A stretch of DNA of 63,268 nucleotides, filler included, from Ministeria vibrans ATCC 50519 (lineage: Eukaryota > Protista > Filasterea): NCBI GenBank assembly GCA_943704425.1. It is 6 parts of 6 records of this genome, joined end to end, with 100 filler letters (N's around TTAATTAATTAA, not from the genome) between each part and the next. Parts side by side here need not be neighbours in the genome. Positions count along the whole stretch, not along the records: positions 1 to 17,437 come from CALSCP010000173.1; 5 more parts are not named here. The stretch is one strand, 5' to 3'. Below, piece by piece: positions 14,159-17,272 of the stretch. Position 1 is the first letter of the stretch, and each line of letters starts with the position of its first letter. The position numbers and the translations under genes are program-made. Below the pieces are notes generated by a model. The model was not told the origin of the DNA and searched no databases. It saw only the letters and a program-made list of their open reading frames with translations.

Positions 14159-17100
14159 ATGAAGTACCTGTCTGTGGGAACATTGACACTGACGATTGCC
14201 ACGGCTCTTTGTTGCTTAGCGACGGTGGACGCGCGTAAGTCTCTCTCTCCTCTCTCTCTCTCTCTCTCTCTTTCAATCTCATCCTTCTTGCCTCTTTTCC
14301 CCAATGGCAACGACGCGTAGTCGAGTGTGGCACCATTGAGGAGTACTGGAGCACGACGTGCGGCATGATTGGCTCGCCGCAGTCGCGTGTGTGCAATCGG
14401 GGAGGCGAACTCGTTTCCCCTCAGTCGTGCACGACGCACTTCCACAAAGACTCGCGGCCCTGCGGCTTCCTTCGGCTGGGCTGCCAGTCCCGGTGCAAGC
14501 GCGCAGCCAAGCCTTGTCGTAAGACACACACACACACAGGCCTTGCAGTTGAGCTGCGCTCTCACGAGTGTGTGTTGTAAACACATCGTTTGTTGTGTCT
14601 ATCGTAGGAGCCGGCGAATTGTCATTTGTGCAGCGTGAATTTGCCCTGCATGCAGACATTAACCATGTCCATGTGGCCGTGCTGCGTAGTCGTGGCCAAG
14701 ACGGTCCTGCGAGCGTCACGGTTGATCTTGATGAGCCTGCTGACTGGTTTGAGCCTGTGCCACTCGAGTGGGAAACGCAAGATGCTCATCCCAAACACGC
14801 TGTTGTGTCTATTCCACCGGTACCCTTGTGCACCGTTGTTGTTGAAACACCCTCTAATCTCTCTTTTCAGTCAATGGTGGGACAGGAAATCAAGCTACTA
14901 CTGCGCGACCCTGTCGGTGCGACACTCAGTGCACCATCCTCTTTCACGATGGTGTCGGGTGTTGACAACCCGTCCCTTCACACAGGTCAGCCAGACATCA
15001 ACGTTCCCTTCACATACAATTTAAACATACGTCTTGTTACATTTCGCATACGTCTTGTTACCCTTATCTCTATGTGTGCGACTCGTAGAATCAATCCGCC
15101 CAACTGCGTGTCAGTTTCGTGCCAATGAATCTGACGGTTTCATACCCATCTCGTTTGAGCGACTCATTCCAAGCGGAGACGATCCCTCGAAACTCCCAGA
15201 ATTTACAATCAGCCTTAAAGTGATCGGAGGAACCGCAAGTAGAAAGAATCACCACCAAATTGATATAGCTGATATTGATATTGACATTGTTCTTTAAGCA
15301 CCTGTGGCTGATTACAATCTGATCGACGAGGAGCACCCACTCACAGTACATTGGCTTGCAGGCGAGGTGGGTGTGCAGACGGCCCTGATTGTTGTTGCTG
15401 ACGACGACGATGCCGAACTCGACGAAACCATTGAGTTGGTGCCCATTGTAACAACAAATCAACACACGCACACGCACGCACACAAACATACTCCGGCGCG
15501 GTCGCCACACACAAAGCACATTCACTCACTCGCGCGCTCACATGCATACCTACACTCTTATACCTTAATACCATTCCCATATAGAACTACCAGTTCACCA
15601 GCGCGGATTCGTGCGCCGTCATCACGGCCGTTATCCTCAACGACGATGCTGTCGATCATGCCCTCCGCGTCTCTAAAATCCAGAAACTTAGTGCTGCACT
15701 CAAAATCACTCTTGACCGCCCTGAAAAGGTATACACACAACTCTCTTTCTTTCTTTCTCTCTCTCTCTATCTATCACTTTGTTTCTTTCTCCTCTCTCTC
15801 TCTTTCTATCACTTTGTTTCGTTCTTCTCTCTCTCTATCACTTTGTTTCTCTCTCTCTATCACTTTGTTTCTCTCTCTATCAGTTTGTTTCTCTCTCTAT
15901 CACTTGTTTCTTTCTCCTCTCTCTCTCTCTCTCTCTCTCTCTCTCTCTCTCTCTGTCTGTCTGTCTCTCTCTCTCTCTCTCTCTCTCTCTCTCTCTCTCT
16001 CTCTCTCTCTCTCTCTGACTATGGCTTCACTTTAATATAAATAATAATTATTATTATTTTATAATATTATTATAACAAAATTAATTATATTATTGTTATT
16101 AACATTATTGCGTGTTAGGAGCAATTTTTGGGGGAGTTTCAAACGCGAATGTTTGACAAGGGACACCTTTTCTTCCGCCGGGGAACGGAAATGTCCAATG
16201 AAATGTATGTGATTCAAACAGGCTCGGTGGATCTGATTGACGAGACGGACGGAACGGCCGATATACGTCTGTTTGGTGGTGATAGGTATGAAAGACAACC
16301 GTGCATCAAAATTGTTCATTGACATTGATTTTTTTTTCTGTAGTTTTGGTGAACTCGCAATGCTGTATGATTTTCCTCGTCAGCGCACAGTGATTGCGCA
16401 TACTGCAGTGACCGTGTGGATTATGGACCAGGAGACGTACCAGCGGTTTGTTGCTGATGACGATGATATTCGAAGTGAGTTGGAAGCGAATTTGGTCCAG
16501 GTAAGAACAATGAGTGTGACGTTGGTGTACCTTTTGGGTGTGACGGCGCCTTTCCCCTGCAGGACTTTATCCGTCGTCAAGCACGCAAGCCCCCAGTGTT
16601 GTTGTTCCCAGGACTGGCAAGTAGCCAGATGATTGCGTGGAAGCGCAAGGAGTGCCGTGGGTTTAATGTGCATGTGGGAGATGTGGTGTGGGTCTCAGTC
16701 GAAAAGGTAACATAATTAAGAGTGTAATCATATTTTTAGTAGTTGTAGTAGTAGTTACACTGACTGGTGAATTTTGTTTGAATATTGTCATCAATATTTT
16801 GTGTGTTTTTATGTGTAGATTGTTCAGACGTTGACTGTAGATGCAAACTGTTGGTTGGACTGCCTCAAATTGAGTGACAATCAAGTAAACAAGAAAAATA
16901 GCAACGCGTCTCACTATGATGTATACTCATTCTTGTATTGTCAAAGACGGACTCTGAAGGGTGTCGTCTGCGCGCAGGTGAGGGTCTAGGCGCACTGCAA
17001 GATCTCATTCCAGGCATCACGTACACTGCATAATAGCAATGCGCAATAAGTGTCCACTCACGCTTCTTTGCTGTCGAATAGGTTTACCACCATTTTTGGA

Positions 17101-17272
17101 GAGATTGTCAAGACACTTGCGGCGGAGTACAACTACGACAGTAACTCGCTCTTGGGCTTTCCGTACGACTGGCGTCTCTCCCCCGACATGCTTGAGTCTC
17201 GCGATGGCTACTTTTCCAAGTTGAAGCGTGGTGTGGAAACCGCTGTGGCGTACAACGGAGCCCCTGCTATTG
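14159..17272 (+). CDS. Signal peptide, Cys-rich module, 2x Calx-beta, cNMP-binding domain and LCAT-family (PSAT/PDAT-like) acyltransferase; 3'-truncated at contig end
   Basis: About 13 phase-consistent exons. Signal-like MKYLSVGTLTLTIATALCCLATVDA. Calx-beta motifs GELSF...VAVLRSRGQDGPASV and GGTATPVADY...DDDDAELDETIEL...VILNDD. cNMP motif MYVIQTGSV...FGELAMLYDFPR. LCAT motifs PVLLFPGLASSQM, NCWLDCL and FPYDWRLSP..LESRDGYFSKLK. Confidence 0.82.

Follow-up and report, generated by a model that had tools for sequence, protein, structure and literature searches.

The window analysed here, a stretch of 63,268 nucleotides of Ministeria vibrans ATCC 50519 DNA joined from six parts, begins with a part of contig C173 (positions 1 to 17437 of the window, G000:C173:82394-99830) from an assembly of 29.7 Mb and 2860 contigs. 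At 14159-17272, on the plus strand, this part carries the 5' portion of a gene for a predicted secretory-pathway protein with an acyltransferase-like domain of the LCAT family. The surrounding DNA is eukaryotic in character: its introns are short and of the GT-AG type, and CT microsatellites are frequent. Splicing in silico of 13 exons, from the ATG at 14159 to position 17272, gives 1843 nucleotides, or 614 codons without a stop; GT donors and AG acceptors are present at all 13 exons, and the open frame closes in phase 1 at 17272. Encoded in order are a predicted signal peptide, a module with eight cysteines (8-Cys module), two Calx-beta-like modules, a cyclic-nucleotide-binding (cNMP) domain and an LCAT-family domain, of which only the first third is present. 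It should be noted that profile and similarity searches were run on each exon separately, and that the spliced translation served only as a check of frame continuity. Judged from this frame, its splice borders and its collinearity with a protein of Capsaspora owczarzaki described below, the locus is a genuine multi-exon single gene. An earlier note on this DNA, made without database searches, had proposed one continuous frame at these coordinates and with this order of domains; the frame and the order both hold, with Pfam matches to the two halves of the cNMP domain on exons 8 and 9 and to LCAT on exon 13, and the coordinates are exact.

Exon 1 (14159-14234) contains the start codon and a putative N-terminal signal peptide (MKYLSVGTLTLTIATALCCLATVDA). 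It is the only exon in which a 19-residue Kyte-Doolittle window scores at least 1.6 and it encodes the sole hydrophobic stretch of the protein, with a Lys before the hydrophobic core, acidic residues after it and V-D-A ahead of the exon junction. Hydrophobic N-terminal stretches also occur in the orthologues from Ichthyophonus, Salpingoeca urceolata, a metagenome (P0148) and Capsaspora, in the last case after a 45-residue extension of the gene model; no signal peptide was seen in the gene models P0003 and P0030. Exon 1 probably encodes a cleavable signal peptide, with which the product would enter the secretory pathway. Exon 2 (14321-14518) encodes the conserved 8-Cys module, which has no family assignment (no Pfam match and no usable ESM Atlas match) and shares 53-55% identity over 64 residues with four orthologues (BLASTP E 2e-20 to 2e-22). 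All eight cysteines, of which the earlier note had counted seven, are aligned in the orthologues and are evenly spaced without CxxC pairs. A zinc-finger reading of the module was rejected, since it has no such pairs and is placed after a signal peptide. In addition, an N-D-S/T sequon is kept in all six aligned proteins. Because of the signal, the 8-Cys module and the conserved sequon, and because no membrane segment follows, the protein is placed in the secretory pathway, which agrees with the topology first proposed for it, including the absence of a transmembrane segment between its domains.

The following five exons correspond to Calx-beta-like module 1 (exon 3, 14608-14819; exon 4, 14871-14985) and Calx-beta module 2 (exon 5, 15089-15238; exon 6, 15299-15447; exon 7, 15585-15728), with the tail of exon 7 leading toward the cNMP domain. 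The intron between exons 3 and 4 (14820-14870) is only 51 nucleotides long, in frame and free of stops. Its retention in the gene model was rejected, since the spacing after splicing (6 residues, compared with 7 in Capsaspora) fits better; this spacing was judged by reading the sequences directly, as exon 4 was misplaced in the MAFFT alignment. An isoform that retains the intron, and with it 17 additional residues in module 1, is possible.

Pfam Calx-beta (PF03160, cut-off 27 bits) matches none of the window exons and nothing on C173 in a genome scan. The open 125-residue stretch at 14610-14984 likewise gave no Pfam Calx-beta match even at E 10 and no PDB match, and Pfam and PDB searches with the Calx exons, taken singly at 38-70 residues each, were blank. 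The assignment of these exons to Calx-beta consequently rests on the orthologues and on a local profile. Pfam recognizes Calx-beta in the orthologues from Capsaspora (38.3 bits, residues 283-379, overlapping the stretch aligned with exons 5 to 7) and Ichthyophonus (45.1 bits), and NCX1 CBD structures match the Capsaspora protein with E 1.7e-6. The local profile comprises 398 repeats of bacterial proteins and was seeded with the Capsaspora module, so that the test is not fully independent; it scores exon 3 at 14.8 bits (profile positions 2-41), exon 4 at 8 bits (86-108), exon 6 at 20.7 bits (50-89) and module 1 of Capsaspora at 51.5 bits, and all five exons fall at their expected profile positions, in order. 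The two Capsaspora modules also match each other in hhalign (88% probability, E 3e-6). A word search with Capsaspora residues 100-545 returned mostly bacterial multi-Calx-beta proteins at about 55% coverage, enough for both modules, with the aligned range unchecked; the eukaryotic family was not among the matches listed, and the search gives no taxonomic census, but it speaks for two Calx-beta modules in tandem. AlphaFold2 modelling of the Capsaspora orthologue from 17 sequences was confident for the cNMP and LCAT parts only, and rendered the Calx region as all-beta with a predicted local distance difference test (pLDDT) score below 70, mostly below 50 in module 2. The two Calx-beta domains of the earlier note are thus upheld through the orthologues and the local profile, and find no Pfam match on the window exons themselves.

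By inspection only, acidic motifs (DDDDAELDE, LNDD) lie at the usual motif places in module 2 and none is found in module 1. Since module 2 alone has the acidic motif, it is more likely to be stabilised by Ca2+ than switched by it. Ca2+ at the levels of the endoplasmic reticulum (ER) or the external medium would saturate a Calx-beta site, and Ca2+ control is for this reason unlikely to work as a switch. Elsewhere in the genome, the only direct Pfam Calx-beta match lies at G000:C1507:62563-62892, within a 1563-codon open frame.

Intron 7 (15729-16118), which separates the Calx-beta exons from the cNMP domain, is 390 nucleotides long and has GT...AG borders; it includes a CT microsatellite and minisatellite copies (CTCTATCACTTTGTTTCT), and its tail is rich in AT. 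Beyond it, exon 8 (16119-16285) and exon 9 (16344-16500) encode the first and second halves of the cNMP domain and match complementary halves of Pfam PF00027 (profile positions 2-38 with 21 bits and 51-88 with 24.2 bits, respectively); with the exons searched apart, each half remains below the cut-off of 27.5 bits. Exon 9 alone matches PKG and regulatory subunits of PKA in the PDB (E 7.4e-10 for the latter), and its phosphate-binding cassette FGELAMLYDFPRQRTV aligns with FGELALLYNAPRAATV of a PKA regulatory subunit (PKA-R), with the Gly-Glu pair and the Arg in place.

The N-terminal third of the LCAT-family (PDAT/PSAT-like) domain is encoded by exon 10 (16563-16706), exon 11 (16819-16884), exon 12 (16947-17020) and exon 13 (17082-17272), the last of which ends with ..GAPAI in phase 1. 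Pfam LCAT (PF02450, cut-off 21 bits) matches exon 13 with 39.3 bits at profile positions 67-120. Intron 13 follows (17273-17437 in the window) and runs into copies of minisatellite CTCTATCACTTTGTTTCT, among which C173 stops at 17437. A scan of the genome with the LCAT profile found one N-terminal piece (profile 61-121), which is exon 13, and one matching C-terminal piece (profile 126-308), on the minus strand of C2159 at 17123-17704. The latter belongs to exon 14 (C2159:17129-17706, minus strand, 192 amino acids; 69.8 bits to PF02450 at 126-306), which carries the catalytic Ser. Exon 14 starts with CG ATT TGT CAT TCA CAG GGA after its ...ag acceptor and, with the leftover G of exon 13, would read GAPAI-A-ICHSQGNS, so that the intron phase agrees across the contig break. 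On the minus strand of C2159 there are seven exons in total (exons 14 to 20, 16194-17706), of which the six after exon 14 have GT-AG borders, stay in frame and end with ...SRVSHTEL and a stop codon; the joined product of exons 1 to 20 would have about 988 residues. The serine exon sought in the earlier note is hence found, as the CHSQG exon 14 on the minus strand of C2159, and not as the next exon on C173.

All three catalytic residues lie on C2159, and would belong to the window gene through this join: Ser in CHSQG (exon 14), Asp in SGDQTVPY (exons 16 and 17) and His in LEHREIV (exon 18). The Ser and Asp columns (S705 and D995 in the numbering of the Capsaspora protein) are invariant over 17 sequences, and the His is aligned in every orthologue that extends that far. 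The CW..C and PYDWRL motifs are present as well. The best named matches of exon 14 are a cluster of plant phospholipid--sterol O-acyltransferases (PSAT, P0008, 78.9 bits), in agreement with the PSAT1-like motifs read in the earlier note, and an oomycete protein named PDAT (P0023, 69.1 bits), as against 27 bits (E 3e-5) for human LCAT and 15 bits for LPLA2. Pfam scans found no patatin domain in the exons or the orthologues, the catalytic domain being PF02450. The catalytic part most likely belongs to the PDAT/PSAT branch of the LCAT family and would act as an acyltransferase or a phospholipase. A tree of the exon 14 region leaves the deeper branches of the family unresolved. A third, weak LCAT-like match (18.4 bits) was observed in the genome at G000:C1964:3692-3895. 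In other protists (e.g., Tiarina and Chloroparvula; P0123, P0125, P0108, P0136), proteins with an LCAT-family domain also carry fused C2, ankyrin or DEP domains, and by these domain contents the family has gained different regulatory N-terminal domains several times.

We infer that exons 13 and 14 belong to one gene split by an assembly break between C173 and C2159. Two observations weigh against this join: it does not lie within one contig, and C2159 upstream of exon 14 runs through a degenerate copy of the minisatellite to a divergent open reading frame (ORF) of 487 codons. This ORF is only 1.1 kb away, so that there is no room on C2159 for 13 N-terminal exons, and because it adjoins the serine exon, one of the two contigs would have to be mis-joined or broken at the repeat. 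At G000:C2159:17700-18900 (L008:4700-5900), C2159 is probably mis-joined, or C173 belongs at that point. A genome search with both flanks of the gap yielded no bridge; the unique flanks were found once each, and elsewhere only the dispersed repeat was matched. Across the 29.7 Mb assembled, the minisatellite CTCTATCACTTTGTTTCT recurs in 3261 exact copies, many of which lie at the ends of contigs, and it is probably among the chief reasons why the assembly is so fragmented. It typically occurs in short tandem runs beside (CT)n, and is also found within the introns of this gene (window 15740-15900 and 17320-17437).

Relatives of the gene were recovered in an exhaustive search with exon 14, in which the best match was Capsaspora owczarzaki CAOG_08941 (P0001, 1139 amino acids; XP_011270612.1, UniRef A0A0D2VVZ0, 'Cyclic nucleotide-binding domain-containing protein'). 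In addition to the Calx-beta match given above, this protein has Pfam matches to cNMP_binding (49.2 bits) and LCAT (170 bits), and the protein from Ichthyophonus hoferi (P0005) likewise combines Calx-beta with cNMP_binding (33.3 bits) and LCAT. Four further proteins have cNMP and LCAT matches and no Pfam Calx-beta match, namely those of Salpingoeca rosetta (PTSG_08974, P0003) and S. urceolata (P0059) and two from metagenomes (P0148, and P0030 from JGI/IMG), with cNMP scores of 20.1-25.6 bits, below the 27.5-bit Pfam cut-off. A protein of Fonticula alba (H696_06047, P0054), named at its source as a CNB-domain protein, has a Pfam LCAT match. The fusion is one polypeptide in relatives, since P0059 is a complete ORF in a transcriptome and P0148 is a single, uninterrupted, intronless ORF of 3.6 kb on its scaffold.

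The exons match the Capsaspora protein in strict order, across both the repeat-rich intron 7 and the contig break. For example, exon 2 aligns with residues 101-164, exon 8 with 431-467, exon 9 with 488-534, exon 10 with 540-587 (69% identity), exon 11 with 588-609, exon 12 with 610-633, exon 13 with 639-700 (52% identity), and, on C2159, exon 14 with 702-914, exon 17 with 996-1033 and exon 18 with 1037-1081. Among the exons of module 2, only exon 6 matches significantly (330-373, E 6e-6); for the weak matches of exon 3 (167-205, E 0.055), exon 5 (292-328, E 0.57) and exon 7 (382-416, E 0.058), it is the order that counts rather than the score. Identities to relatives at the level of exons range from 28% to 69%, and in the tree of the exon 14 region the Ministeria sequence is sister to Capsaspora (support 94/93). 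By collinearity and by this tree, the gene is an orthologue of CAOG_08941. The earlier note knew of no described protein with this architecture. A full-text literature search, covering both the combination of the three domains and the identifiers of the orthologues, indeed found no description of such proteins; the databases, however, contain proteins with this architecture from Capsaspora, from Ichthyophonus, from the two Salpingoeca species and from a metagenome. On these domain matches, the architecture is already present in public databases as uncharacterised proteins of opisthokont protists, and the gene described here is one more member.

The explanation we consider probable is that of a single gene of about 988 codons, orthologous to CAOG_08941, whose product is a soluble, ER-lumenal enzyme of the PDAT/PSAT type with N-terminal regulatory or scaffold modules. 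Of its elements, the gene model and its domains, the orthology and the catalytic residues are shown by the results above; the contig join, residence in the ER, the substrates and a regulatory role are inferred. Had the exons instead come from two adjacent genes, or from a chance chain of ORFs, the split would be expected at intron 7, which is long (390 nucleotides) and filled with repeats and near which the earlier note had feared such a division, or at the contig break, which divides the LCAT domain between C173 and C2159. The frame is continuous through intron 7, the orthologues are collinear across both places (exons 7 and 8 align with successive stretches of the Capsaspora protein), the intron phase matches at the break, and P0148 and P0059 unite the domains in one ORF. 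A hydrolase fold cut at its nucleophile elbow would also presumably fail as two proteins. A division into two genes is thus extremely improbable. As to the location of the protein, the C-terminal HTEL is identical in the Ministeria and Capsaspora proteins, in which the preceding tail is poorly conserved (10 of 31 residues identical), and the genome has a gene for ERD2, the KDEL receptor. In human CES2 (carboxylesterase 2) HTEL is an ER-retention signal, the removal of which leads to secretion (PMC4624787). PDAT, the nearest enzyme branch, acts with its catalytic domain facing the ER lumen, and in yeast Lro1 a lumenal linker N-terminal to that domain limits the access of lipids to the active site (PMC11790888). 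The signal peptide, the 8-Cys module, the sequon and HTEL together suggest that soluble residence in the ER lumen is probably to be preferred to secretion. Several points speak against it. The genome's own calreticulin ends in the canonical KDEL, and HTEL would thus be a variant of the signal that this organism uses; the choanoflagellate orthologues do not have HTEL; and in other protists the fusions of LCAT-family domains with C2, ankyrin or DEP appear to be cytosolic, so that not all members of the family need be lumenal. An enzyme secreted to act on external or prey membranes, with its cNMP domain sensing extracellular cyclic nucleotide, would share the signal peptide and the 8-Cys module, and is consistent with the choanoflagellate and P0148 orthologues, which have no KDEL-like end, and with the intact cassette in this species. 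Animal LCAT is itself secreted, and LPLA2 is lysosomal or secreted. Given the shared HTEL in an otherwise poorly conserved tail and the lumenal action of PDAT, we regard such secretion as unlikely; of the 'lumenal or extracellular' placement in the earlier note, it is the lumenal part that is favoured. A cytosolic enzyme regulated by Ca2+ and cyclic nucleotides, with the N-terminal hydrophobic stretch as an anchor and most of the protein on the cytosolic side (as in NTE), would suit the cNMP domains and NCX Calx-beta domains, which are normally cytosolic, as well as the cytosolic-type modules of some LCAT-family fusions and the P0003 and P0030 models in which no signal peptide was seen. The charge distribution of exon 1 favours a lumenal C-terminal side, however, and the eight evenly spaced conserved cysteines without CxxC pairs, the sequon in all six proteins and the HTEL end also argue against the cytosol, and this placement appears very improbable.

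Regulation of the lumenal enzyme by ligands is a further alternative, in which the cNMP domain would bind cyclic AMP (cAMP), cyclic GMP (cGMP) or another ligand in the secretory pathway and open the catalytic site, with the Calx-beta module adding Ca2+ control. This true ligand switch is consistent with the intact Gly-Glu and Arg of exon 9 and its match to PKA-R and PKG, with the acidic motif of module 2, and with the position of the cNMP domain, which lies directly ahead of the catalytic domain in every orthologue. Against gating of this kind, the cassette is degenerate in Ichthyophonus, in both Salpingoeca species and in P0148; in Capsaspora it reads FGAVQ...SRLTTV, without the Glu, and in the choanoflagellates both the Gly-Glu pair and the Arg are missing. 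Saturation of a Calx-beta site by ER or external Ca2+ also counts against it. The ER lumen is not known to contain a source of cyclic nucleotide, and, to our knowledge, binding of cAMP has not been demonstrated for the cNMP domains beside the lipase of NTE/PNPLA6. A true ligand switch is therefore of low probability. The degenerate cassettes of the orthologues make it doubtful that cyclic nucleotide gates the protein; such control is possible in this species but is not a conserved property of the family. The description 'Ca2+/cyclic-nucleotide-gated' in the earlier note is accordingly unproven and weakened, with an acidic motif in module 2 only and a cassette that is intact here and degenerate in the orthologues. 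It is quite unlikely that a cNMP domain of the PKA-R type senses cyclic nucleotide or a small ligand on the lumenal or extracellular side and gates a PDAT-like enzyme. In the lumenal PDAT/PSAT-type enzyme that we prefer, the signal peptide would be cleaved on entry into the secretory pathway and HTEL would hold the protein in the ER lumen. The C-terminal part of about 520 residues would form an alpha/beta-hydrolase of the PDAT/PSAT branch, whose Ser, by analogy with the LCAT family, may take an acyl chain from a phospholipid of the lumenal leaflet and hand it on to diacylglycerol, to a sterol or to water; the sequence reveals neither the substrate nor whether the enzyme is a transferase or a hydrolase. 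Ahead of the enzyme would stand the disulfide-type 8-Cys module, the two Calx-beta sandwiches and the PKA-R-like cNMP domain, and all of these would serve to place the catalytic domain or to hold it in check. The cNMP domain most likely regulates the enzyme from within the molecule or acts as a scaffold, at the position taken in yeast Lro1 by the autoinhibitory lumenal linker.

Comparison with known systems places the protein closest to its uncharacterised relatives. Capsaspora CAOG_08941 and its relatives in Ichthyophonus, S. rosetta, S. urceolata and Fonticula have the same order of signal, 8-Cys module, two Calx-beta modules, cNMP domain and LCAT domain, with HTEL in Capsaspora; unlike the Ministeria protein, in which the cassette is canonical, they have a degenerate cassette and longer low-complexity inserts, and the S. 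rosetta model is without the Cys module and the signal peptide. NTE/PNPLA6 and Drosophila SWS also have cNMP domains N-terminal to an ER-associated serine phospholipase, and are a precedent for cNMP domains that do not act as plain cAMP sensors. NTE, however, is a patatin and not an LCAT enzyme, its bulk faces the cytosol and it has no Calx-beta or Cys module, so that the likeness is one of analogy and not of enzyme homology. PDAT (yeast Lro1) and plant PSAT1 share the Ser/Asp/His residues, CW..C, PYDWRL and PF02450 with the protein described here, and PDAT is also lumenal with an N-terminal regulatory segment (PMC11790888). PDAT has a type 2 transmembrane anchor, whereas the Ministeria protein appears to be soluble, with a signal peptide and HTEL, and neither PDAT nor PSAT has the 8-Cys, Calx-beta and cNMP modules that it carries. 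Human LCAT and LPLA2 (PLA2G15; structures 4XWG and 4X90) are soluble enzymes of the secretory pathway with the same Pfam family and fold, but are distant and have no N-terminal accessory domains.

Two other genes were observed on the same part of the window. The upstream neighbour, at 11999-14045 on the plus strand, is a Peptidase_S9 gene (prolyl oligopeptidase/acylaminoacyl-peptidase-like) whose end lies some 115 bp upstream of the ATG at 14159, with a short run of N near 12050. On the minus strand, at 2111-6030, two long open frames match Pfam Vinculin (53 and 76 bits) and represent one vinculin/alpha-catenin-like gene, as would fit a genome of holozoan or amorphean origin.

Enzymes of the PDAT/PSAT/LCAT type move acyl chains out of membrane phospholipids. 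Where Lro1 has a restraining segment, the family to which the Ministeria gene belongs sets folded cNMP, Calx-beta (two) and disulfide-type modules, probably on the lumenal side, where a cNMP domain is unexpected. This family spans Fonticula, ichthyosporeans, filastereans and choanoflagellates, and the protein is directly testable in Capsaspora, a tractable organism. Should the cNMP domain bind no ligand, it would show clearly how a sensor domain can be put to structural use in the regulation of a lipid enzyme. Should it bind one, it would represent a new place for cyclic-nucleotide sensing, and gating of the enzyme by such a ligand, if true, would mean that the unicellular organisms most closely related to animals use cyclic nucleotides for signalling between cells or within their secretory pathway.

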